Part shown: positions 2,216 to 61,190 of the stretch, piece by piece
How the letters are laid out: the number at the start of each line of letters is the position of its first letter
Numbering within the stretch: position 1 is the first letter of the stretch
Origin: Lenisia limosa
Taxonomy: Eukaryota; Protista; Breviatea
DNA: 64,000 bases
Reading direction: 5' to 3'
Assembly (NCBI GenBank): GCA_001655205.1
Contig: LPNZ01007335.1
Coordinates: forward strand, 1 to 64,000
Notes under the pieces: generated by a model
Told to the model about the DNA's origin: nothing
Databases searched by the model: none
Seen by the model: only the letters and a program-made list of their open reading frames with translations
Made by a program: the position numbers and the translations under genes

Positions 2216-3439
<1,224 letters not shown>

Positions 3440-3600: not shown

Positions 3601-6600
3601 ATGACAGCTTACTTAGAACCCTTCAAGGTTGATATCGCAACCCAGGTGGCTGCCTTTGCTTCTCTTTCTGTTGAACAGGTTAAGTCTGCTATGGAGGTAT
3701 GAACTGCTCTGTTCAGGGGAATATTTACTAATTGATAATATATAGGCTCCTCGTGACCCCAAGCTTGGTGACTTTGCTGTTAACGTTGCTCGCTTTCAAA
3801 AGATGGTTAAACTCTCTGGAAAGCCCGTTGTTCTGGCCAAGGAGTGGGCCGAAAAGGTGGGAAGAAAATAGCACAATTCATTTTTTGGCTTGTGTCACTC
3901 TCATTCTCCTGGAGGTTCTAAGGGCCCTCTGATTAAGCTATTATTAGTGTGGCAGTTTACACCTCCTATATCTTCTTTTCACCTTGAGGAAGTGGCACCC
4001 TCGCACACCTCTTACTTGTTCTTCTTCCCTTCCCAATGCCCTCCTCCCCGAGTTGGTTTTAACTCGGGTCAGATCGAGAAAACCGAGTTTGTGTCATCGG
4101 CTTCTGCAGCTGGTCCCTTCATGAACTTCCGCATCAACGCCGAAAAGGCCGTACAGTGGGCCATGGGCCTTTTTTTTTTTTCTTTGTGGTTATTGTTTTT
4201 CATCTCTTTTGTTTTATTTGAAGGTCCTTTGTGTTCTTTCTTGAGCTGGTTGCACGTTTAGTTTGCTAACACAGTCAGACTCATCACAGATGCAGTCCGT
4301 GAACAAGGCGATAAGTTCGGCTGCACCAATGTCGGCGCTGGCAAGAAGGTGAGTAAACTGGCTTTACATTTTGACCTTTTTCTTATGGCTGATTTCTAAC
4401 TGCCAAGGTTGTTGTTGAGTTTTCTTCTCCCAACATTGCCAAGCCTTTCCATGCTGGTCATCTCCGTTCCACCATCATCGGTAACTTCATTGCGGTCCTT
4501 CACCGCAAGCTAGGCTATGACGTTACTACGTAAGTCACTTGAATTCTGCTATCTCTTCAACTGAAATTTATACCTTTTCTCATTCTCTCCTTAGCATCAA
4601 CTATCTTGGCGATTGGGGAAAGCAGTACGGTCTTCTTGCCCTTGGTTTCAAGCAGTTTGTGGGTTTCTTCTCTGATTTTCAACCAAAAACAAAGCGGATG
4701 ATGTAACCAAGCCCACTTCAGGTTCGGTGACCGCGAGGAGCTCAAGAAGTCCCCCATCCTTCACCTCTACCATGTTTACGTTGAGATCAACAAACTTGCT
4801 GCCGACAACCCATCGATTCACGACGAGGCCCGTGCCTACTTCAAGCTCATGGAGGAAGGGTAAGGATCTGATAAGTTATTGACAGCGCTAACAGATTACA
4901 GTTGAATTGACTTTATAGTGACGAGGAAGCTCTTTCTCTCTGGCGTGAGTTCCGTGAGCTCTCCATCGAGGAGTACAAGAAGATCTACCACCGTCTCAAC
5001 GTTGAAGTGAGTTCTCTTCGATATTGTTGAATATTTTATCAGGAAATAACATGTTACAGTTTGACGTTTACTCTGGCGAGTCGATGATGAACGAAGGCAT
5101 GCTCCGTGCCGTTGACGAGCTTACCAAGCAGGACCTCCTTGTCGAGGATAACGGCGCTATGGTAGGCGTGCCTTTGTGAGGGTTTCTTTAGTACCAAAAA
5201 AACAAATATCTCTCTTTTTTTTTGTTTTTGATTTATCGGTTTTTTACAACCTGATTGGAACACTAGTTATTGTCCTTAACCCTTTAGATTGTCGACCTCA
5301 AGGCTGACAAGGCCGGTGTTGCCCTCATCAAGAAGACTGACGGTGCTACTCTTTACATTACCAGAGATATTGCCGCAGCCACTGAGAGACATGAGAAGTA
5401 CAACTTCGACAAGGTTGGTTGGATACCGGTAGACTTCGCTGTTGATGGCTTGAAAGTTTTCATGACTCTTCAGATGTTCTACATTGTTGGTGCCCAACAG
5501 GACTACCATTTCAAGCAGCTCTTCTCTCTGCTCAAGGTTTGTGATGATTAGCTCCACCTATCAACGCAATTTTGAATGATCCTATTTTCTGACATATCTC
5601 CAGAAAATGAAATGCGATTGGTCTACCAAGTGCCAACATGTCAACTTTGGTATGGTCCGTGGAATGTCCACCCGTAAGGGTACTGTGGTCTTCCTCAATG
5701 ACATCCTTGAAGAGGCTAAGAACACCATGTATGAGAAGGTAAGCGTTGGTTATTTTTTCAACTTTTGGGCGTTTTGTTTAATCCTTGAAGATGAAGGAGA
5801 ACCAGGAGAAGTTTGACTCAATGGAAGATCCCGAGGGTGTTTCTGACATTGTTGGTGTCTCCGCTGTGATTATCCAGGACATGCAAGCCAAGGTGAGAGC
5901 AGTTGTTGTTGGCTTTTTGGGGTTGTTTTTGTCCTTTGTATGTAATTTCACAGTATGTTTGCGTTATTCTACAGGGTTACAATTACCTACCCGTTATGGA
6001 CGTCACTTACGCTGTAGCGTGTCAAGGATTATGACTTTAACTGGGACCGTATGACTGCCACAGACGGCTACACTGGTCCTTACCTTCAGGTGAGTAAAAC
6101 CAGCCTCAGTTTACTTTGCTGGATTTGACACTCACCTCATCAGTACGCCCACGCTCGTCTCTGCTCAATTGAGCGCAAATCAGGTATCTCAATGGAAGGT
6201 GAATTCGACTCATCTCTCGTTGCCAGCCACCCTGAAGTCCAAGCCCTTGCCCTTGAGATCGCCAAATACGCTGACGTTAGCCTTCCTCCTTTTCCTGTCT
6301 TCCCCTGCAACTCTTGTTGTTTGACCTCTCGTAGACTCTTGAAAGTGCCTCAAAGTCCTGCGAACCTTCTCACCTTCTCACCTACCTGTTCAACCTTGCC
6401 CATCTCATCACTTCTGGTTAGTTGGTTGACCAATGCTTTTCTGTTTCTTTGCTCCCCCCCCCCCCCNNNNNNNNNNNNNNNNNNNNNNNNNNNNNNNNNN
6501 NNNNNNNNNNNNNNNNNNNNNNNNNNNNNNNNNNNNNNNNNNNNNNNNNNNNCCTGCTGTTGCCAAAGCTCGTCTTATCTTCCTTTCTTCAGCCCGTGTC

Positions 6601-8476: not shown

Positions 8477-11400
8477 CTACAATAATGAGGGGACGTCTTC
8501 AGCCACCTCGGCCGGCGGCTCAGGTCGAAGACTTGGGTTCCGAACGAGGGTCATCGCTTTTAGCCACCTGCAAGGTTCAAATTGGTGCTCTGGGTAGCAT
8601 CATTTCCAAATTACACTTACTAATAGTATATAGAAACTACTACTGTGTGTACATAAAAACAGTCTTATTCAAATGAGTATTAGTGGGGACCAACCTATTA
8701 CGGACAAGCCTTGCACGGGGGTTCGCCTTTCGGTGCCCACCCGGTCGTCGATGCTCTGTGTGTGTCAGCGAAGACGGAAATCAAGCAAAGTGCAAGCGTT
8801 GACCTGTTGACCCTCAAACCAGACACCAGTAATCCAATAAACACCCGCATGATCGGGTTATGGTATCGGTGATGCATGACACACAAGGCTCCAACTATAT
8901 CGTAAGAAAGACTGTCACAAAGACTAACAGGAAGAGAAAGTACTTCTGTTCAATTTCGGGTCATCCACACGAGCATATGCTCTTGCTACCTATACGAAGT
9001 GAAAACAACAGGTCACCGGGCACCTACGTTAAAAACGTATTTAATGAAGTGCCAGATAGCCTCAATGAAGCCTGCGAAGACGTATGAAAAGGACGCCATG
9101 AAGTCGTAAATGCCGAAGAGCCGACGACTGCACCGTCAAAAACTCTTCAAGGGCTGAAACTCACTAAATGATACTCTGTCGGTTGTCAGTAAGGATGTAG
9201 CGTCCACCGTTAACTATTATGAAACGTGCCCATGCACGGAAGGAGCCTGGTGTATGTGGTCAATTCAACAGTCATTCTCCTACCCAGCGTAATTGAAATG
9301 ACCAAAAGGGAAAGGAGCCACTCTTCGGCTACATCCCCCCAAAACATCAACATTCCAAATAAGGCAAGCATCAGAAAGAGGAAGAAGAACGTAATCATAA
9401 AATGAGCCGCCTTGACTGTAAGAGTCTCAAGAATATTCCATACCTGGAGGCCCGGGAAAGTCGTTACCGCCCAAGGTTGACAAATAGATCTGTCAATGGC
9501 GAATTCACCTCTTCTGAGCATGAGTACCTGAGTGTTATTCGGCACCGGAAATGTCATGCTTACATGTTCCTTAAAATTGGAGAATATAGACTTCCAAAGC
9601 CAGAGCAGATAGAGTGTTGCCAAGACGAAAGCGAATAGACATGCTTTGATCACATCGATTTCAAAATCATCAACAAATTTGGAAATCTGTCAGAGTAAAA
9701 ACACTACAAAGTGTCCAGTGGAATCCCTTGTAGCAGGGCCTACATCTTGCTGATAGGTGACGATCACAGCTGTTAACGCAGGTGACGGTTTGCCCCACCC
9801 CAAAAGCAAGCCTGAAAGTCAAAATGCTGCAAAGGAAAGTGTGTTGGACTAAACTAGATACTTGGGTATTACACACAAAAGCCCCTTGTACTTGGTAACG
9901 TGAGAGATATTTGTCCGAAAACCGCCAAAGCTGAAGGAGAAGAAGGGTCTTTGACAGAGTCAATATAGAACCTGACTTGCTGGCTAAACTCCGGGTCATC
10001 TGGACGTCAGGTGATTGCATTCGTAGACTAATAAATACTCTTATGATATACTAATAGCATATCCTTGAAAGAAGTGAAACCCTATTTGTGAACAACGACA
10101 TTTTTAGTCCACTATCTAAGTCATACCTGAGGTTTCAACAACGGCTAAAAGGGATTTGGCGGCAATTGAAGTCTCCCGCACAACCTAAAGCATAACAAAA
10201 GACTTGCGGGCAATACCTGTCGGATTTGCTGAACACCAAACTGGAACCACAGAATTCCAGCGTACATGCACGCTGCAACCATGACCATTAACTAGAGAGT
10301 AAAAGGGAAGTGAATCGATTCTCAGCATACCAGGACCCAAAGTGATAGTGCAAGCCAGAGCCTCAAGGGGAAACGGAAAGGCTTCATGAAGGCCTGAGGA
10401 TCACAATATGATTGGAATTATGAAGTAATTAGTAGCACCTGACAAAGCTGCTCATACTATCACCAAACAGTTACGTTACTACACCCACCCTATTCTGAGA
10501 GAGTGGTCCAGGGGTGTACTTTTTCTTGTACTTCATCTTCTGGTGATGTGTCATTCGGTGCCATCCTTGCACTACTGGGTTCTTCCGTCGAAAAGCGGAC
10601 TAATGAGGTGACCAACTATTGCCAATGGCAGTATCAGATGCAGTGTAGTGGCTCACTGTTTTATCCTCATCCTTGAGCCTGAAAGCTTCCTCATCTTCCG
10701 CTATTGTACTTCGATAAAATCCAAAAAATCGACCAATGGAACTACAGAAATGAGTTTTTTAATAAAAGATTGTTTGTTCCCACCTTTTCACAGAGTGTTT
10801 GATTTGATGAGGTTTATAAGAGATGTGCTGTTGGTGTGAGAAGCAGAGGAAATTACTCACCTTTCTGTCAAGGAGTTTCTTGACAAGGTTAATATCCATT
10901 TGTGACACTAAGGTTAGGGGGTATTCACCTTTCCTAGTCTTTATCTTTTCGGTGAGTTCAAAGAACCGAATAAATAAGAAGCTCACAATTTGCTTGAAAA
11001 GAGACCAGATAAAGCTGGAGCAAATGAAGATAGTGAGGCATCTCAGGGCCATGTTATAAGCGTAAAGTGGGCGGTCGTATTTACCTTCTATCGATGGCGT
11101 TTCAATACTAAGGGATAACGACCATACTGACCAACGTTATGAAGATAGCAACCGTATAGGCGACCATGAAGGCAGCTCCGACGGGAAGAAGCCACGTGCG
11201 AACGCTACACTCCTCTTAGAATTGAAAAATAACAAAGTGCTTGTATATCATATGATATCATAAACAAGGCGTGAAACGACCAAAAGACACCCTTACCTCA
11301 CCTGATAACGTTACTAAGTACAAGGGGGATGATTGGTAAAATCACAATGTAGAGCAGCATGTCAAAAGAGGCTGAAACGTAATTTTTTTTGAAAAGGTAT

Positions 11401-14400
11401 GATGAACGACGGCTGAAAAATCAATAAAAGAGACAAATTTATGTTATGATGTTCTTCATGCTGCTTTTTATACCACCACCCTCACTGAAAACGGTTATGT
11501 CGGAGTTGAGAGAATTGATAAAGCAAAACTCATGAGACGGTTCAGATGCGACACCTCCGACCTGACATGTCAGTTTTCGTTCTGTTAGGCCTCCACTTAC
11601 ATAGAATATCAGACGGTAGGTCCCTGAAAGTCCGCTAATAAACCTAGACAAGTTAGCTGGTGGAAACTGCCGAAGCAGCATAGTGAGCCCCTTACAAGAG
11701 CAGCATAGCCCCTTACGAGAACAGCATAGCCCCTTACGAGAGCAGCATAGCCCCTTACAAGAGCAGCATAGCCCCTTACGAGAACAGCATAGCCCCTTAC
11801 GAGANNNNNNNNNNNNNNNNNNNNNNNNNNNNNNNNNNNNNNNNNNNNNNNNNNNNNNNNNNNNNNNNNNNNNNNNNNNNNNNNNNNNNNNNNNNNNNNN
11901 NNNNNNNNNNNNNNNNNNNNNNNNNNNNNNNNNNNNNNNNNNNNNNNNNNNNNNGCAGCATAGTGAGCCCCTTACGAGAAGTTGTCAAACTGAAATGAGC
12001 CGTTTGCGTTTGTCGTTCCATTTGTGAAAGTGAACCGAGCAGAGTGAGTCTGTGTCCACTCTTCGCCATCCTGCATGGACCATAATGAAAGACCGGTATA
12101 AGGATGATACTATCATGAATTATTTGGGAAATTCAGTCGTGAATTAGATTTCAAATTCACTGTTATAGAAGTGAACCAACTGCACCTTCTTTTCGGCCAC
12201 AACCCTGATGACTTTGAAACCGCTTGGACTGAGTCCTGCTGGATATTCCGTCCATCCGTCTATCAAGTGAATAGCATGTCAAGTGGTGTCTAATGAAAGC
12301 CACATGTAGTATGACACAATAATTCTCTCAAATATGTTGTGACAGGTGTATCAAGCCAGCACACCAGGCAGGTAAGGGATTGCCTTGATCAAAGGCTGTT
12401 CTATTGAACTCTCGTCATTTCCTGAAGTCAAGCGGTGCTAATATGTTACTCAACCGAACAGAGAGGACCAACACAAAGCTGGCTGGAACCTCCAGCAATG
12501 ATAGCGTCGGAGACCGAAGAGGTCAGTCCAATTGGTTGTGTTTCTATTTCGACTCTGCAAGTTGTTAGGCTTTCAGACTACCCACCTTAATACAGTGTTC
12601 ACAATTCGAATTGAAGAAGAGACAGCTTCAGTCCAGCTGGTCGATCTCATGGCCAACCCGTATTTATCATCTGCCATGTTAAAATTCCTGATGCAGACGT
12701 AGTATATCATATACTATATGTTATATCCTATTTCATATCATATACTCTTCACAATTACAATGCTATATTATATCATGTTAGCAAAAACTATGAGCAGATT
12801 GATGACATGCCCCTTTGCCAACCCATATCCTGTGTAGCAGCCTGGGGGCGGAAGACAAGTCGATACATTCCGGTTTCAGCTGCGAGTATACTGGGGAGAA
12901 AGAGTACCTGAGGTAGTGTAAACCGCAACCAGAGACCAAAGTCAAACCCCAAATGAAGAAGGCAGCCACATCGTACCTCTCCAAGGTGGTTAGAAACAGC
13001 GTAATCAGGGTCAATCACAGCGTTTTTACCAACTACAAAAGAAATAAGAAACTTCACAAGCACTTTTAAGAGTTCCTTTTTGTCCCACTCCCCTCTCACG
13101 AGTTTCGAATTCCAAACAAAATGAGCGGCAACTTAAATAAATCTCATCTGGAAGAACATCCAGTGAAATGACCCCATCAGCCACTGAATATGAGTCCAAG
13201 CATGAGAAGTTACCCACGGTTATCGGAAACGTATGGCAATGCAAAGCCCATTGTCCGAGCGGCCGACTGAATGCAGTTGACACAGTCCTTTGGTGGTGAA
13301 GACAGAGAGGGGAATGCTGCTTGATAGATTCAAAAAAGACCTACTTGACTGAAACGTTGGGCTGGTTCGATTGCCACATCCAAGTCGGCGTTGCTAACCC
13401 TGTTGCCTCCCTGAAGAGGTGAGGGTAAGAAGTGCACTCACTGCAGTGTACACAAGGAGATGGAAGGGAGGCCGATCGTATCCAACTGCATGCCCTCTCT
13501 GAGCGGCTGCTGAGCGGATGTTCACAAATCGGGCTGGAGTGTCACATTCGGATTGAGTGCGGCAAGAAGACTGACCCCCTTACAATCTGTTATGAGTCTG
13601 AGATACGAAGGTTGATTGGACACTGTGAGCGACCAACTCAGGTCGAGGCGCGATGACGGCATGTCGGCCAATTGGTAGGTGATAAGCGACTAAGGAGTCA
13701 ACGAGAGGCAGTGCTAACCTGGCCTGGGATAGCGGAGTTTACTGTTATTTCAGTGAAATCTGCTTGCTCCGTCTCGGGATCAACGGTTGCAATATTACCA
13801 CTCAGTGCATCTGAAAATGTGAAAAGGCCGTCCCTATGTCAGGAAAGCTCACCATTGGTTTGACCCCTAATAACTGCCTCAATCCTAACACGACACTCTG
13901 TATGCTTTCCAGAACATGGTGCTGCAATATGAGTTGTTGTAGAGAAATGGGAACTTCAAATATCATTGAAGTTGCCCCCCCCCACGGTAGTATGCGCCTT
14001 GGAGATGTACCAAGGGCTGTGAGGCTAACGGGAAACCTGTGGAAGCAATACTAAACAGTGATAACACCAATTACCACATACCTTGCAGAACTCTCAATAA
14101 CAGAAATCTGAAGGTCCCAGACCGGACGAAACAACGTTTCCTTTATTGTCACAACAAATTATTATCATGTGTGCTTGGTAAGAGAATATATCTAAATAGT
14201 ATTACATGAATGAATCATAATATCATCACGATTTGCTTAGAGTATGTTTTAGAGTGGAAATTTGCTGACCTGAACTTTGACACATGCATCCATGTTGCCC
14301 AGAGGACATAGAATCAGCGAATACTACAGAATCAGGACAAGAAACAACGCAACGGTCCTACGTTAATATCAGTGTTGCCGGCCATGAGATAGAGAGTAGA

Positions 14401-17400
14401 GTTGAGCCGGCCGTTAGGGTCGGATGCCAGAAGAGTCGGGTAAATGCGGCAAGTCTCACTTGACTCATGAAAAATGAAGAGATTATGAGGTAAGCCGAAA
14501 CGAAAACTCACGTTGTCTCTTCAGTAGATTCACACAACACTTCCACTGTGAAGTTTGAAAGAGGAGCAGACGTCTGTGGAGATAAGACAGGGAGTTCTGA
14601 AACAAGAAAACCTTCGAGTCTTTCAACGTGGCAGTCAGAGGAAAGGGGAAGGGGTGCGTCACAGATATTGGAACAGCGGATATTGAGTCGTTCTGTATCG
14701 GAAAGATCAGGGAAAAAAAGCAAACCAGTGGTCTGGAGGTGACATCGACAGAAAAACTGTATGGATTGGCATGGATCATAAACACTTGACTAAAGGGTCA
14801 GGACCTGGACCGAAAGCGTTACCTGGTCCTGGTGTTGGCGGTGGCAATGACAACCAAACGGCCAGCGAACCAGTCCGGTACGGGCAATGTCACTGTGGAC
14901 TTGCCATTCTCCAGCGTGAAGGCGGCACTTGATGGGATATCCCTGGGGGGGGGGGGGNNNNNNNNNNNNNNNNNNNNNNNNNNNNNNNNNNNNNNNNNNN
15001 NNNNNNNNNNNNNNNNNNNNNNNNNNNNCCTGGAAACATTGCCGTATACCGAGGCTAAACTATCAGTATCTTGAAACCACAGCAACTATCAACAAACCTT
15101 GGACATTGGGGAAACTTCCATTATAATAAGATGCCCAGCAACAGGTTCAACATCCACGTTGGAGCGAAGCGTTACAACCGCCTGTCCGTTTACAGCTGTG
15201 TACTCCGAAGCACTTGGGTTCAAGTGAGCCAGAGAAGACTGGACTGGGAACACTCCAACCACGGCTAAAAGTTGTGAGTGTCCGAAGCCTCTTACCTCGG
15301 CTCACTTCCTCCCAAGTCTTCAGAAGGGGGTACCTCCTGTTCATCAATGGACACGCCTCATGCAACCTGAAAATCAACATGATACCTTGCACTTAGATTC
15401 CTTTTAAATGGCATACATTCTATGTAGAAATGAGAAAATCAAAAAAGTATCATTACACAAATAAAGGATTTCACCCGAAAAATTGCTTTGCACCCCGCGT
15501 ATACCTCATGCTGATAGTGACCATATCCCCGTGTTGAACAGCGATGTTGAGTTTACTGCCTTCAGAAACCGTCACTACAATGTCAACGCGTTCACAAGAG
15601 CCAAACTCACATAAATCATCAGGCTCAACTTCAAACTTCATAGCGACCGAACTCTACAGAATAAAAGCTGACCCAGCCACATACTTTAACAAAACTGCCC
15701 CAGCCACATACTTTATTTGCTGTAGTGAGGCAGTCAATGGGAATGTACTCGTCACTGTACTCAATTACATGGTCGTTTTGCTAAATAGGGTCAAAGGGAC
15801 ATGTAAAGAACGTTCAACAGTGTACCCAGAACTAACCACAAAAGAAGAAAAGGAGATTTCAGCACAGAGACACACTGACAATTCTGGTGCATATGATGCG
15901 TTACCACGCTGAAGCTAAAGGATTCAATTACCTTCCGTTCAGCGCCCCACCTCAATTTCCATGTCAAACACAGCCCCTGTATGGATAGTGTCGGGGACTG
16001 TCGAGTTGGCAGCTAAGTGAAGTTCCGCTTCAAACCTATCATGTCATAACTGGCGTTTGCAAAAAAGGTATCATGTGGATAAAACCTATCATGTATAACC
16101 GGCCTGCAAAAAAGCTATCTCTCGGGTGCCTCACGGTTTTTCATAGCGCTCAAGGTACGTAAACGTATTACTGAAGAAGTTTGATCGAATTCCATCAGAT
16201 CTGAAAGTTAACAGGATAACACTTAGCCAACCTTGCATAGATTTGGTATTGCCTCCCTGAATAGTTAATGAAAGGGTTACTTCGTTCCACCTACCATGTA
16301 CACCCGCAGAGAAGAAAGGGTAAATAAGCAGCTGCCCATCAGGATACGCGACCATCATCTACAAGTCAATGTTAAGCTAATTGCCACATACAGATTTGGC
16401 ATGCTTGACCTGGACAAACCCGTCATCAGGTTCAGCATGGAGGGTTACGTGGTGTTTCTCGCCAAAGCCTATTCGATAAAATCAGATAAGAGATCAGGAA
16501 ACTCACAGAAACCGTCAAAATCAGCAAATTGTATCATCAAAGGCGATTCCACTACTTCGTTTGTCTGAATGGTCACAAAGGATGCGATTAGAGTTAGGAG
16601 CAGAATAACCCTTTACATACCCGGCAAATGTCATTTGTGCATTTTGGCTCAGCCTGAATCAAAAGCAAAGCAATTCGTGTCGACACCTAAACTTGTTACC
16701 CATCTCCCAGATCCTCTACTCACCGTTATCAGAGGACCCTTAAAGAGAGCGTCACCGCTTGAGACTTCCAGTCCAAATGAACCCACTCGACTATAGCGTC
16801 AAATGGAAAAACAGAAAATTAAAACCCCTCTCCCACGCTTGCTGCGAAAAGGCCAGAACTAAAGTGGTCACTCCCTGACTGTTCGTCAGTTGCACCTCTT
16901 CAGCGTAGTGGACCTAAAGCCCAGTAAGTCTCATGTCAATCATAAAATGTACTTCCAACTATTCATACCTTTTTAGAGTATCTGAAGAAGGTAATGTCAT
17001 TGGTTGCCTGGGAAGTGGGGTAGGTCACACCATCTGAATATTAGTTCTTTCTGTACAAATTGAAGCATAAAACTACAGGCTTACTAATGGAGTAGATATT
17101 CGCTTGTACGAGTGCTCCATCCACAGGGTGACCATTTTTGTTTTTCTGCTGAATGAGTAGCTTAAGATCCTTACCACAACGACAGGAACTTGGAAGAACT
17201 CCTTTTCCATCACTTCACTTGGGAATTCTGCAGAGATGGTTCGACCCTATTTCGATCAATAGGGAAACCTATGAACAACAAAAAGAATACGAATTACCAT
17301 ATCATCGTCATTTTGAGCAATACTAAGGTATCTTGACTCTGTTGTACCCGGCAAGAAGGCTGAGATGTTGTCGATCATAAAACGAACACGCTGCAAAAGT

Positions 17401-19190
17401 CACAACTCAGCAAAATTATGTATGGGATCATCAAATATTATTACCACTAACTGCGGAACCCCTTGTTGAAGATTCAATTGTGAAAGACTTGAAAATGGCA
17501 ACTCCAAACTCGTCCACTTCGGCAGTCATTGGCGAAAACGTTGCTACAATTGTGATGAGAACTACTTGATAGTACCAAAACGCTCAATTCCTTTCAAAAT
17601 ATTTAAATAAATTTATTCACCTCGTTTTCGAACCAGCAATCAGCCTGATTCAATGAAATAGTATACTTACCGTTTACGTTACCACTGTGGTACGAGGCAA
17701 TTGTTGAAGATAAATCTGAAAGGTTGGAACAACAACAAGGGATACTCACCTCCTCCATCCACCACAGCATGTACAACACGCCCCTTCAAATTGTCGGCTC
17801 CGATCCGCAAGGACCCGACATTGAGCCGATAGCTTCCGATTGGTGTTCCCACCACTGCACGAACTGGCGGCGGGGCTGCCCCCATATACTCCACTGTCAT
17901 TTGGTTGACATGCTCAGCTGGGAATTAAGCAATGTAGGTTTCACATTGTAAATGGTTCATGCAAATCTGGATGCTCAACATACTGATGGTGATATGCATG
18001 GAGGTTCCAACGTTAACGCCACCGGAATTCGTGGTGTTAAACATCAAAATATAGGCTCCAGGCAAAACAGTTGATGTAATCAAATTCGAAAATTCAACTG
18101 TCTGAAAGCAGTAAAAAAACAAGGCAATGAGTCTGAGTCCTTATCCCTGTATGTCAAATGACAGTAAACGGCCGTGAAAATGACAAGGTTGAAAGTGAAC
18201 CCACGCCGTCCTCCAAAGTGGTGTTCATAGTGCAGCCGGATAATGTCGGACCACATGACCGCGCGTTTTGTGTTGCATATTGCGAAGGAGGGTCGTAAGC
18301 TATAAGGTAAGTAAGCGCAGAAATGTTTCATTGATCATCATGTCGCAATACAAACCATAGTGGTTGGTTCCTTGAGGCAGGATATGACTGCACCTGGCTG
18401 ATGCTTCAGATGAAGTGAATGACAGGGCTTCCAAACGACCTGATATGAAAACTCCCGACTGTGGCGTACCAGCAGCATTACGAGCAATAAGCTGGACCAT
18501 GAAATGAGGTTAAGGTCACAATTCATTTTGGGGATTGGATATGAGGGAATCCAAATATCTAATAATATTCTTGTATGAAAAGAATAAGATACCCAACATG
18601 ACCCACAATGCCACATAAACCAACCAAAATAGGCAATCCATTGAGACCATGGATGGTGGACCCTGCCTCCACGCTCAGAGGTGGTGGATGCATGAGTAAG
18701 ATCTAAACAATAAAACGGTCACATTTCCAACAACCACATTACCTCTGAAACCAATGTTGACCCTGATGTTCTGTTGGGATCAACTATTGCCAATGGAAGA
18801 AGAACTAAAGTGTCAGATTAGCGAGACTCTCACTTCCAATCGCTATTGCAAACGGCAGGATAAAGAGAAGAACGGCCAGAGACCTTGAGATAAATTGGTC
18901 GCTCACAAGGTCAAAAAAAGGCTGGATATATGTCAGAGAAAGCAGAAAAGCTGTCAAAACTGAACGGAATGGTTGCATACCTGTTGTCTATGATCAACTG
19001 GTAGGTTCAAAAGAGAGGCTTCCACTGACTCTCTCGAGTCCTGTGGACGCGGCTTTTTGTCCAAAAGATGCTCAACTTCACTAAACTGTACATATGCTTC
19101 CTGGCTTTCTTCTGGGGTGAAAGATGAGACAGGTGCCGAGTCGTCTAAAAGACAATCCCCAATGGCTGAAGAATCAATTGTATGGCTCAT
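8477..19190 (-). CDS. Giant STRA6-like (RBP-receptor family) multipass membrane protein with an N-terminal TM anchor and a large beta-rich ectodomain
   Basis: C-terminal exons give PFRFPLRLWLALSL; KACLFAFVLATLYLLWLWKSIFSNFKE..LMLRRG; YRRLFGIYDFMASFSYVFAGFIEAIWHFIKYVFNVARAYARVD; HHRYHNPIMRVF; RARLVRNR|WLKAMTLVRNPSLR. All match STRA6 motifs in order and spacing. Upstream exons (11400-18700) stay open and are beta-rich. Exons 2-3 encode a TM helix (SLAVLLFILPFAIAIGILLPLAIV). Not every ectodomain junction was resolved, so single-gene continuity is inferred. Confidence 0.8.
11644..11975 (-). repeat. Intronic 21-nt minisatellite (plus-strand unit GAGCAGCATAGCCCCTTACGA/CAA), partly in an assembly gap
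   Basis: At least 6 units are visible before the N gap, and the same flank appears after it. Each unit reads ..TC/TT|GTAAGG.. on the minus strand. Confidence 0.9.
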
Positions 19191-40885: not shown

Positions 40886-43497
40886 ATGACATTAATGGTT
40901 TGACTTAAGTTGGAGTTTATTTTTTAGACCACTGTTTCCGGTGTTAGAGGCATCTTTGGGGAGTCTCTTTTCCCTGAAACTGTCTTTAAGTAAGCTATAT
41001 AGGCCGATGACTAATAGATTTTCTCTTTCTTACTCTCTCCGTTCCTATCAACTTCCTTGCAGAGTTCTCATTGTCTAGGTACGTTACTGCCTTCGGAAAC
41101 TATGTTTCGGAGGTTGAAACAGGAAAAAACATCGTAAGCATTTGGATTCCCTTAATTATATGTTTGTTCTGGAGGATTTCCCCGCAAGTTTTTTCCTCAC
41201 GGTTTTTCCATAGATTGTTGGCCGTGATAGCCGTATTTCAGGCCCCGCTCTTATCCCCATTGCTATTGGCGTTTTACAGGTGGGTTGAATTTCGCCCATT
41301 CCTTCCAACTATTTGCATTTGCCACTCTTATTGACCAGGGACAAGGGTTCAATGTTATTGACTGTGGAATCGTTCCCACCCCCACGGTAAGATTGGTTGT
41401 ACCATGGGAGAAGAATAAAAAAAAACATTGCCGTTTGGAGATTGGAGTATTTTTTTTGAAACAAATGACAAGAATCTTATGTCTTGTTTGTAATTGGAAA
41501 AATATGGTAAACATTTGCGTCCCTCTGAGTGGTTACTCGTCTGAATTGAAGTTGTTGATCTTTGTAGGTACAAATGCTTGTTAAACTCCATAATGCGGCT
41601 GGAGGCCTCATCATCACTTCATCCCACAACCCCAGAGAGTGGAATGGTATGCAGTCTTCTTCCAAGAAATGTGCTAATGTTGTTAGGTTTAAAGTTTGTC
41701 AGTTCTGACTCCATGTTCCTTTCCCCCGAAGGGTAGGAAAACAATGTGACAAGACTAGACTCACACTGTAGATGCAAAAAGGTCTACGCTATGGTTGATA
41801 GTAACACTTTCCGAATGCCTGAAAAAAGTGAGCACCGTTACTCTATCGGAATAGTGTAGATGTAGCTGACCTCTTTAGTCACAGCTGGTAGTGTGACAAG
41901 CATTGAGACCGCCAACGATCAACACATTGACGCGATCTTTGCTCTCAAGGTCATTGATGTGGAATCTATCCGTGCTAAAAGGTTCAAAGTTGCTCTCGAC
42001 ACCATCCAGGGTGGGCTTGACGCAATCCATGTTAATCTAACGTCGCAGGTGCTGGAGGGCCAATGATGACAAAGATCCTTGAGAGATTAGGATGCGATGT
42101 ATGATGAGGGAGTTATCAGCCCAATATGCTTCAATCTGAATCACTGGTTTGACACACTCAGGTTGTTACTATCAATGCAACTCCTTCCGGCGAGTTTGCA
42201 CATACTCCCGAAGTGAGCTACCTCTGCTTCTCTTGTCATTGTTTACCCAAATAGCCTATTCCTGCCAATCTTGGAGATCTCTGCGATCTTGTTAAGGCAG
42301 TTAAGGCCGATATCGGTTTGTGGCTTGAAGTTGGGTCGAAGCCATTCGCTTTCAATCATAATTTGTCCTTACTCGTTGGATGTTTTCACACCCAAGGTAT
42401 TGCTGTTGACCCCGATGTGGATCGCTGTGTGTTGATTGACCAAAACGGCGATCACCTAGGTGAGGAGTATACCCTCGCCATTGCTGTGGATATGTACCTC
42501 AGAAGAACACAGGCCAAGGGATTTGTTGTCAAGAATCTGTCATCTTCGAAGGCCTCAGATGAGGTGGCTGCTCGGTACGGTTGCACCTGTGTCGCCGCCC
42601 CAGTCGGCGAAATCAATGTACGTCCTGGGTTGGGAGGGTAACATTTCTTATGACCATACAGGTTGCCAATGAAATGGTCCGTCTGAATGCTGTCATTGGA
42701 GGTGGGGGGGGGGTTAAGATCAATATATTTCCTGAGTACAGGAGCTATTCACTCCTCCATTTCTCATTGCTGTATATTCACTTCTCCAGGCGAGGGCAAT
42801 GGAGGTGTCATGCTTCCGGATCTGCACATCGGCAGAGACGCTCCTCTTGCGGCTGCTATGGGTATGTTCTGGATATCTATTGACAGCTTCGGCCAGATAC
42901 AACTTTATTTTTTATTTCTCATTGCGCGATTGTGGGATAATTTACGCACCAGTTCTCCAAGCCCTTGCTGATAGTGGTACTTCCATTTCTGATCTGAAGA
43001 GCAAATTGCCCCAATGGTCTATTTACAAACTCAAAGTAGGTTAAGGTTAATGAAATATATGTGACAACGTACTTTACGTCTTAATATTGGCTACATCAAT
43101 TTGCCTTCACCTTGAAGGCACCTCTGAAGGGGATCAAGCCCGAAACCGCAATTGCGAAAATCAAGGCCAAGTGGGAGTCCCAGGTTCTTAGTCTCAATGA
43201 GAAGGTCTGAAAGCGATTCATATCAAACAAATGGTCATGTTCTCTTACCCTGCAGGACGGTCTTCGTCTTGACACAGTTGATTGGTGGGTCCATCTGAGA
43301 AGGTAGGAATAATGATTCTTTTGACTTAACCCCAAAGGTCCAACACCGAGCCCATTATTCGAGTCATTGCTGAGGCTCGTGACGAAGCAACTTCCAAAGC
43401 CATTGCTACTCAGTGGGCTGGATTGTTTTCAACGCGCCACAAAGTAATATGTCAAAGCTAACTGATCAGGTTCATGGAGGAAATTGTCAAGTGTTAA
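40886..43497 (+). CDS. Alpha-D-phosphohexomutase (phosphoglucosamine mutase/phosphomannomutase, bacterial GlmM-like subtype)
   Basis: MTLM|TTVSGVRG, IVGRDSRISG, GIVPTPT|VQ, IITSSHNPREWN|GLKF (phospho-Ser loop), GIAVDPDVDR (metal loop), VGEINV, IGG|EGNGGV, HIGRDA, DGLRLD..WWVHLR|xSNTEPIIRVIAEA. Confidence 0.93.
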
Positions 43498-58910: not shown

Positions 58911-61190
58911 ATGACGACTACAAGTATTACTGCAATGACACCTTCATGGGCTACCATCGACCCTGAGAAGATTTCTGCCCAGAACCCTTCTCAACTCTAC
59001 AATCTTTGTGGTGGAAAATGGTGCCTCTCAAAAGAATCTACTTCTATTGTAGATCCTATGAACAATGATGAATTCATCAAAATGCCCAACACAAAGGCAA
59101 GTGAAATCACTCCTTTCATCGGTATGTTCTTGATTGTCGCTCATTGTTGCTTATATAGTTTAAATAAGGTGAAATAAGCATAATGCGGTCCTTTTCCCAT
59201 TGTTTCGGACAGTGTTCTCTTTTTTCTGACCAATTTCTGCCTTCATTGCTTCAGAATCTCTCAACTCCTGCCCAAAATCTGGGCTTCACAATCCTCACAA
59301 GAATCCGGAGCGTTATGTCATGTGGGGCGATGTCACAACCAAAATTGTGATGGAAATGAGAAAACCTGAAGTTGTTGATTATTTCGTTCGTTTAATTCAA
59401 CGCGTTTGCCCTAAACATGATGCTCAAGCCAGAGCTGAAGTTTTGGTGACTCGGTTGGTTTCTTTTTTTATCAAGTATGACTTACAACTTTAGTGCTATG
59501 TTAGAGAACTTCTGTGGTGATCAAGTTCGCTTTATGGCTAGAGGATTCGAAGTTTCTGGCAACCACTTCGGTCAAACCTCCCGAGGCCTTCGGTTGGTTT
59601 GTTTCTTGCCTTATTGCGTCTTGTTTCTACGCTCTTAGGGCAAATTGAAACCCCCTTTTCCGTTTTCTAGCTATGACATTCCTTTTTCAATAGTGATCCT
59701 TTAATCTTTTTAGTTGGCCTTACGGACCCTGTGCTCTCATTGCCCCTTTCAACTTTCCCCTGGAGATCCCTGTTCTCCAACTCATGGGAGCCGTGTACAT
59801 GGGTAACAAAGTTCTTCTGAAGTGTGCCTCAATGACCTCCTCTGTCATGGAACAGTATATCCGCCTTATGCACTACTGTGGCGCCCCAAAAACTGATATT
59901 GATCTTATTCACTGTGGTGGTGCAGTTATGGGTCAGCTCATTGAAATGGCTAAGCCCCGTCTTACCCAGGTTGGACTTTTTTTTTTTTTTTGACAGAAAT
60001 GTGTTCTTCCTCTGACTCTCTAGTTTACTGGTTCTTCTGTGGTTGCTGAAGAGCTCGCTCGTATCACCAATGGCAAGGTTAAAATTGAAGATGCTGGTTG
60101 GCGAGTAGTGATGATATTTTTTTTGCTGTTGTTGATGTTTTGTCTGACGCAATTTTGACGGATAAAGGTTTCGACGTGAAGATCATGGGCCCTGATGTTC
60201 AGGTTTGTAATCTGCTTTCAACATTTCAACATCATCTTACTTCCCATTTAGGATGTTGAGTACGTTGCCTGGCAGTGCGACCAAGACGCCTACGCTCTCA
60301 GCGGACAAAAGTGTTCAGCCCAGTCCCTCCTTATTGCACACGAAAACTGGATGAAGGCCGGACTGACTGATAAGATGGCAGCCATTGCCAGTGAGCGCAA
60401 GTTGTCCGACCTTAGCATTGGACCTGTTCTTTCACACACCACTGACGAGATCCTCAACAAGCATCTTGGCGCTATCCTCAAGATCCCTGGTAGCAAGGTC
60501 CTGATTGGAGGCAAACCTCTCGTCAACCACAAAATTCCCGAGAAGTACGCTGCTATCGAGCCCACCGCCGGTATGAGGGAAGGGTTGTTTTTTATACGAC
60601 ATAACCCGATATATTAATACATGAAATCTTTATGTTGCAACCAAGACATCGCTTACGTCGCAGTGTTTGTTCCCATGAAAGAGCTTTTGAAGAAGGAGAA
60701 CTTTGGACTTTGCACAACTGAAATCTTTGGCCCATTCCAGGTGGTCACCGAATGGAAGGATGGGGAAGAAGACCAAGTTGTCATGTGCTGCGAGAGACTC
60801 GCCCACCACCTTACCATGGCTGTAAGTGTGGTCGTTCTATCTGTACCCTCTGCATACCCTGGAGCGTTTTGACCTTACAGATCTGCTCCAACGACCCCTG
60901 CTTCATTGAACGCATGGCTGGAATGACGGTCAATGGCACCACTTACCTTGGGATCCGTGCTCGTACCACTGGCGCTCCCCAGAACCATTGGTTCGGCCCT
61001 GCTGGTGACCCACGTGGTGCTGGAATCGGAACCATCGAGTGGGTGCTCCTTCAGTTACCTTTGATCTATCACATTTCTTAATGTTTCTCACTTTCCTACT
61101 AGGGCTATCCGCTACGTTTGGTCATGCCACCGCGAACTTATTCAGGACTTTGCCGTTCCCACTGGCTGGACCCGTCCCCCTCCTTCCTAA
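58911..61190 (+). CDS. ALDH12A1: Delta-1-pyrroline-5-carboxylate dehydrogenase of the plant ALDH12 type
   Basis: SWATIDPE, CPKSGLHNP..PERYVMWGDV, RWPYGPCALIAPFNFPLEIP, EDAG|FDVKIMGPDV, DQDAYALSGQKCSAQS (catalytic Cys), EIFGPFQVVTE, RARTTGAPQNHWFGPAGDPRGAGIGT, WSCHRE. Confidence 0.95.

Follow-up and report, generated by a model that had tools for sequence, protein, structure and literature searches.

A stretch of 64,000 nucleotides (nt) from the protist Lenisia limosa (Breviatea; GenBank assembly GCA_001655205.1, contig LPNZ01007335.1, positions 1 to 64,000 of the forward strand, here called the window) carries on its minus strand a gene that is real, expressed, spliced and continuous across both of the assembly gaps within it. 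We put about an even chance on the reading in which this gene encodes one giant fused protein of ∼2,000 amino acids, a multi-pass membrane protein with a half that resembles the retinol receptor STRA6. Most likely, the protein is a member of the STRA6 family with a variant architecture.

STRA6 works as a dimer with bound calmodulin and accepts retinol from RBP; its role where there is no RBP and the reason for the bound calmodulin are regarded as open questions (PMC5954442). STRA6 and STRA6L are on record from chordates, family trees include cnidarian sequences as well, and the history of the family beyond chordates has barely been charted (PMC3184775). In the limited literature covered, where absence is not proof, no report was found of a non-animal STRA6 member, nor of any member that carries a giant ectodomain.

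An expressed and spliced gene

A splice-aware model places the coding region between an ATG at 19190 and a TAG at 8479-8477. An earlier note on this DNA, made by reading the letters, had described a multi-exon minus-strand gene with the ends 19190 and 8477, and the RNA-anchored model arrives at the same limits. The longest stop-free stretch in the whole window is 271 amino acids. Two public runs match the window: X1, a polyA RNA library, and X2, in which all sampled words match and for which the library kind is unrecorded. The X1 contigs match the region as spliced pieces only, on the minus strand. They yield 20 introns, 17 as direct joints and three from loose contig ends with letters at 11191, 11976 and 16622. 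All 20 are of the GT..AG type on the minus strand; 19 measure 31-152 nt and one measures 332 nt.

Four extra introns (11562-11600, 11372-11485, 12908-12976 and 8568-8694) are deduced by contig arithmetic. For the first two, expected covered lengths of 119 and 70 nt (ratio 0.588) compare with depths of 1.21 and 0.71 (ratio 0.587), and the third is deduced from RNA depths of 2.08 versus 0.47. In the case of intron 8568-8694, RNA contig 1 is 482 nt long with 479 nt placed, as expected if 5 nt of it reach into the terminal exon, and the donor at 8694 and the acceptor at 8568 are compatible with the reading frame. When the RNA-supported joints are spliced from 10760 downward, a single open reading frame (ORF) runs as far as the TAG at 8642. 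Further upstream there are four spliced RNA contigs, and each of them is open in exactly one frame over its full length.

The introns are tiny, with a mode of 31-40 nt, and show no marked pyrimidine tract (22 introns, 8756-16620). Of these 22 introns, 18 have a branch-like T[GTA]A[CT] 10-13 nt 5′ of the AG. Introns as short as these, with a close-set branch site, differ from those of most animals.

The gene model takes its codon log-odds from the coding sequence that RNA supports, scores splice sites with matrices for donors and acceptors and with a branch feature, and is anchored at the RNA joints. With the anchors removed, the model finds 18 of 22 known introns, so that exons without RNA support can be taken as ∼80% reliable. 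Codon scores in each fifth of the gene are positive in frame (0.17-0.45 bit per codon) and negative off frame; this is weak evidence, because the dynamic programme selects for such scores.

Both assembly gaps are crossed by the gene. The first lies within an intron, and a 21-nt tandem repeat at 11686-11804 (at least 5.7 copies, 93% alike) runs into it, which makes the repeat the likely reason for the break in the assembly at 11805-11954. At the second, the RNA contig runs through 14873-14945, then the letters TAT, then 15029-15054, an intron and 15098-15224; the frame stays open across the gap at 14958-15028 once the three RNA letters are inserted. The RNA lacks the 12 G at 14946-14957, a run that looks like a sequencing or contig-end artefact.

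Two local observations touch the gene elsewhere. A 27-nt tandem duplication at 15664-15715 (1.9 copies) spans the 3′ end of the predicted exon 15780-15712 and the next intron. At the other end, an RNA contig at 8300-8496 has a word depth of ∼257, compared with 2-26 for the gene itself; it stops at ∼8496, with the final ∼20 nt of the terminal exon inside it. This contig probably represents the 3′ end of a neighbour gene with strong expression, in which case the neighbour and the giant gene would overlap at their ends.

Motif similarity to zebrafish STRA6

The case for STRA6 kinship comes from a directed comparison with five zebrafish segments. Four of these (177-210, 256-294, 485-527 and 539-571) were taken from PDB alignments of short human pieces. 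The fifth is the 29-residue zebrafish peptide crystallised in 5K8Q (5k8q_B, molecule Zgc:136689), an entry that we take to be a zebrafish STRA6 peptide complexed with calmodulin. The segments, chosen since their human counterparts looked similar, were scored on the spliced membrane module (the C-terminal ∼620 residues of the protein) against shuffles. The four peptides quoted in the earlier note are all present here, in RNA-supported exons, and the human STRA6 partner that it gave for a 43-residue block is genuine, matching 5sy1_A 485-527 with an E-value of 1.4e-7.

Three segments find good matches, and these sit as they do in STRA6: (i) at the start of transmembrane helix 6 (TM6) after a long cytosolic loop, (ii) in the first post-membrane helix, (iii) at the extreme C-terminus. 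In the segment 256-294, the conserved P-L-K-L motif of the TM6 start is present as FRFPLRL, opening the helix that follows the long loop, against FRFPLKL (269-275) in zebrafish (shuffle p ∼0.03); the human counterpart is presumably FHLPLKL. The segment 539-571, a post-membrane helix with the motif HP-x-M-x-x-F-x-GLL, pairs HNPIMRVFIGLL with SHPVMKAFCGLL (shuffle p ∼0.006). The calmodulin-binding helix of 5k8q_B pairs RWLKAMTLVRNPSL with HWQLLYTLVNNPSL (shuffle p ∼0.0003-0.001), and a weak Pfam match of the terminal exon to a calmodulin-binding autoinhibitory domain points in the same direction. At the level of motifs, both C-terminal calmodulin-binding helices of STRA6 thus appear to have counterparts in the protein.

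When all five segments are chained collinearly on the module, the best score is 170 (z ∼6). For composition shuffles the scores are 120±8 and 123±8, the highest being 152 and 160; none of 6,000 reaches 170. Natural controls lie lower: four ectodomain windows score 110-116, and 81 natural ORF chunks from the window score 114±7, with a maximum of 136. The native segment order ranks first among 120 orders. A rough correction for the picking of 3 of ∼17 segments leaves p near 1e-4 to 1e-5. Because the three motifs beat shuffles, stand in the right order and form a chain with z ∼6, remote homology of the C-terminal half is plausible, and this half of the module is probably a true remote relative of STRA6.

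Architecture of the predicted protein

By hydropathy, the protein begins with ∼75 hydrophilic residues, followed by a strong anchor helix and ∼1,300 residues without hydrophobic helices (Table 1). An in-frame stop lies just 5′ of the ATG at 19190. The ectodomain, for which ∼1,500 residues or more had been proposed, is shortened to ∼1,300 in the model. None of its 10 scanned pieces matches Pfam, and neither do the pieces with the N-terminal anchor. Internal repeats are likewise not clear: an all-versus-all BLAST of the pieces and a small hidden Markov model built from three motif copies found the seeds only. Language-model features show a weak resemblance to immunoglobulin (Ig)-like beta sandwiches. 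Since the resemblance is weak and there are no convincing repeats, the label ‘Ig-like repeats’ is not borne out. The ectodomain is an orphan region that is probably beta-rich.

The membrane module comprises residues ∼1,375-1,998. Many hydrophobic helices are spread across 11371-8820, in agreement with the transmembrane helices that the earlier note saw in the last part of the gene. Three helices within ∼95 residues are followed by a Lys/Arg-rich loop of ∼130 residues, the long helix initiated by FRFPLRL and ∼95 residues with one weakly hydrophobic stretch. Three further helices come next, then a final amphipathic hydrophobic segment and an Arg-rich tail of ∼100 residues. Hydropathy and charge suggest ∼3+4 helices in a positive-inside arrangement; by this rule, the large region would lie outside, and the loop and the tail, both basic, in the cytosol.

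The largest exon includes a possible in-frame intron of 36 nt at 9528-9563 (GTAAGC...TAAC...CAG), which no RNA contig crosses and which may be retained or spliced. AlphaFold models the 134 residues of this exon alone as two long helices with a predicted template modelling score (pTM) of 0.42, which is of no use for a fold search.

Table 1. Features of the giant gene in the window, from the whole coding region and then from N-terminus to C-terminus
Position	Strand	Feature	Basis
8477..19190	-	Whole coding region: 66 exons, 1,998 amino acids, median intron 55 nt	Dynamic programming with RNA joints as anchors
18981..19190	-	First exon from ATG 19190: ∼70 acidic hydrophilic residues, predicted cytosolic N-terminus	ATG chosen by model; no RNA
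18743..18921	-	Two exons with predicted signal-anchor helix, hydropathy peak 2.8	Predicted; no RNA
11486..18742	-	Ectodomain exons: ∼1,300 amino acids, 14 Cys, 11 N-x-S/T sequons	RNA contigs 16338-16629, 14873-15224, 12503-13056, 11486-11643
14946..15028	.	Poly-G run and N gap	Only three letters in RNA
11644..11975	-	Intron with N gap 11805-11954 and 21-nt tandem repeat	RNA contig loose end at 11643 matches 11976-11990
10861..11371	-	Three hydrophobic helices after the ectodomain, first membrane bundle	Hydropathy; RNA contig reaching helices 1 and 2
10400..10860	-	Basic Lys/Arg-rich loop, ∼130 amino acids, ending with YTP, predicted cytosolic	Spliced ORF and hydropathy
10331..10393	-	Exon with FRFPLRL opening a long helix; contains PFRFPLRLWLALSL	RNA-supported; shuffle p as in text
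9284..9686	-	Largest exon (134 amino acids): three hydrophobic helices and a 40-residue loop	Gene model, hydropathy
8929..9127	-	Last hydrophobic/amphipathic segment, exons 9127-9024 and 8985-8929	RNA-supported; aligned earlier to the STRA6 intramembrane helix, similarity at chance level
8820..8894	-	Exon with HNPIMRVFIGLLV (HNPIMRVF inside) versus zebrafish STRA6 SHPVMKAFCGLLL, 556-568	RNA-supported; shuffle p as in text
8477..8567	-	Terminal exon with RWLKAMTLVRNPSL, then TAG 8479-8477, versus zebrafish calmodulin-binding peptide HWQLLYTLVNNPSL	Frame fit, contig overhang; shuffle p as in text

Family or orphan

A number of results weigh against the reading as a fused STRA6-like protein, and the first group of them concerns the kinship itself. 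Pfam and PDB searches were run on single exons or stop-free pieces. Among 34 such pieces, no match to the RBP_receptor family (PF14752) was found; the sole Pfam match is a weak one of the terminal exon to CaATP_NAI (PF12515; E-value 0.028, 14.4 bits, under the 25-bit cut-off), which only suggests a calmodulin-binding character for this exon. A phmmer search of five module exons against the PDB gave no STRA6 or other match at E-values up to 10. The 134-residue exon, searched with phmmer against 1.84 billion representatives, returned its own unspliced ORF (P0001) only, as did a word-index search, and a scan of JGI metagenome contigs gave no match. P0001 itself traces to an ENA contig with annotation of a prokaryotic style. 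These exon-level negatives carry little weight: a short exon gives a search little power, and the HMMER filters hide matches above an E-value of ∼0.25. The kinship proposed in the earlier note is partly supported, by three ordered motifs that beat shuffles, and none of the exons searched matches STRA6 in Pfam or the PDB.

Within the directed comparison, the zebrafish segment 177-210 (TM5) finds nothing beyond chance (shuffle p ∼0.55). The segment 485-527, the intramembrane helix, contains the best block of the earlier note; its best offset falls at the expected position, with a score that equals chance (p 0.25-0.9). A fourth motif, Q-[LI]-V-x-S-F in the final part of TM5, was dropped because zebrafish does not conserve it. 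That this match was lost once the zebrafish sequence was seen means that such matches arise easily. The shuffle p-values are optimistic because the segments were hand-picked for resemblance, and the earlier note's free choice among many families weakens even the corrected value further. Finally, there are ∼3 helices before the loop, rather than the 5 of STRA6.

The same results can be read in another way: the module would be an orphan, lineage-specific multi-pass protein, and its STRA6 matches would have arisen by chance or by convergence towards basic amphipathic helices that bind calmodulin. Such an origin would account for the negative outcome of every unbiased search, the chance-level score of the main block, the success of hand-picked segments, the spurious fourth motif and the deviating helix count of the first bundle. 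It has to contend with three independent motifs that beat shuffles in the correct order and structural contexts, and with a chain whose z of ∼6 stands above every natural control. An orphan module is, in our judgement, unlikely, though the most probable of the alternatives.

Language-model features of the 134-residue exon raise the question of a channel. The nearest clusters are Ion_trans, PKD_channel and SK_channel (0.6-0.79), with low recognition (1734), and the RBP_receptor cluster is absent among the best matches listed, a further point against STRA6 kinship. Such neighbours would be compatible with a cation channel of the TRP or polycystin type that has a large ectodomain. The scores lie within the range reached by shuffled sequences, no Pfam channel family was matched, and none of the scanned pieces has a PLAT, REJ or GPS domain. 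The putative pore helix and the helix that follows are only ∼5 residues apart, too few to accommodate a selectivity filter. A channel of this kind is very improbable.

One gene or two

The second group of opposing results concerns the connection of the two halves. No RNA coverage was found among the X1 contigs at 16630-19190 or at 11991-12502, and an in-frame ATG at 12076 would permit a separate protein of ∼705 amino acids. In the two-gene version, a type-II membrane or secreted protein would run from 19190 to ∼12446, and an ordinary-size STRA6-like protein with an extracellular N-terminus of 82 residues would start downstream at this ATG. If the RNA is left unspliced at 12473, the upstream frame meets a stop at 12448-12446. 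A length of ∼705 residues is also close to that of STRA6 (670 residues in 5sy1_A), and the RNA depth upstream of 12 kb shows no steady fall (2.0, then 3.2, 2.3 and 4.0).

Against two genes, the best frame-keeping splice path across 12502-11991 scores 18.4, compared with 0.8±7.9 for shuffled interiors, of which 5 in 300 are as good; the connecting path thus beats 98% of shuffles. The pattern N-G-x-x-x-F ... G-x-Y-x-L before helix 1 recurs in the RNA-supported exons at 15.0-15.2 kb, so that translation from 12076 would probably begin inside a domain. The position expected for the upstream 3′ untranslated region is without RNA. Two separate genes are improbable on this evidence, if less so than a channel.

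For the fused protein, one RNA contig runs from the final ectodomain exons into helices 1 and 2 through the joints 11975/11644, 11600/11562, 11485/11372 and 11301/11205. As this contig spans ectodomain exons and helices alike, the module carries at least the juxtamembrane part of the ectodomain. The earlier proposal that ectodomain and membrane exons belong to one gene is accordingly borne out by RNA for the last ∼60 ectodomain residues, and upstream of these the link is without RNA.

Comparison with known systems

The nearest known system is STRA6/STRA6L (RBPR2), classified as RBP_receptor in Pfam and as 2.A.90 in TCDB, with zebrafish structures 5SY1 and 5K8Q. The module is similar in size, with ∼620 residues against 670 in 5sy1_A. 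Both have a long cytosolic loop ending in YTP, which is found in zebrafish and human, followed by a helix that opens with F-[RH]-[FL]-P-L-[KR]-L; both continue with four helices and a last amphipathic segment. The tail motifs HP-x-M-x-x-F-x-GLL and R-x-[RH]-W-x4-TL[LV]-x-NP[ST]L stand in identical order, the second corresponding here to the 29-residue zebrafish peptide of 5K8Q. STRA6 has nine membrane helices (5+4) and an intramembrane helix, and its N-terminus lies outside and its C-terminus inside; in spite of the smaller first bundle, the predicted helix parity here (∼3+4) agrees. Unlike STRA6, the protein has a 9-residue insertion between YTP and FRFPL, a shorter linker joining the two tail helices, and an added N-terminal anchor helix with an ectodomain of ∼1,300 residues where STRA6 has ∼50 residues.

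Two other systems share single traits. Polycystin-1-like receptors, with 11 membrane helices, share the layout in which a multi-pass module comes after a very large ectodomain; the protein described here differs in its helix pattern, and its scanned pieces show no signal of REJ, GPS, PLAT or PKD_channel. The terminal exon is weakly similar to the autoinhibitory domain of plant ACA-type Ca2+-ATPases, both being basic and amphipathic, of the calmodulin-binding kind, whereas the class of protein and the position of the domain are different.

A working model of the putative receptor

The favoured reading as a fused STRA6-like protein implies a cytosolic N-terminus, a signal-anchor helix, an extracellular region of ∼1,300 residues and a C-terminal membrane module of ∼620 residues. 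The second half of the module, from the FRFPLRL helix through the four helices and the amphipathic segment to the basic tail with its two helices, would be the remote relative of STRA6/RBPR2. By analogy with STRA6, a calmodulin-bound module may form a lipid-exposed cleft through which a hydrophobic ligand moves between the outside and the bilayer. The ectodomain, supplied in cis, might take over from the docking soluble carrier of vertebrate STRA6, or it might serve in adhesion or sensing. A more far-reaching proposal is that the protein represents a multigene family of giant receptors, each combining a STRA6-type module with calmodulin-binding helices and an in-cis ectodomain of ∼1,300 residues that takes the place of a carrier; this we hold only tentatively, with doubt outweighing belief.

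Other genes in the window

Outside the giant gene, the plus strand carries an exon of a gene of the phosphoglucomutase/phosphomannomutase family (42255-42638) and an exon of an aldehyde dehydrogenase gene (60252-60614). The ENA contig annotation adds a piece of arginyl-tRNA synthetase near 5649-5858 on the plus strand and a faint Ras-like match near 2796-3086 on the minus strand. Rfam gives no match in the window.

Implications for the STRA6 family

Should the similarity be mere chance, what stands is a large orphan membrane-protein gene with a well-documented splice structure. If the proposed family of giant receptors is real, the STRA6 fold and its control by calmodulin would be older than vertebrate retinol transport. 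A relative with the TM6 motif, both calmodulin-binding helices and a huge ectodomain of its own would shift the origin of the family to well before vertebrate retinoid transport, and it would offer a carrier-free system in which to study the fold.

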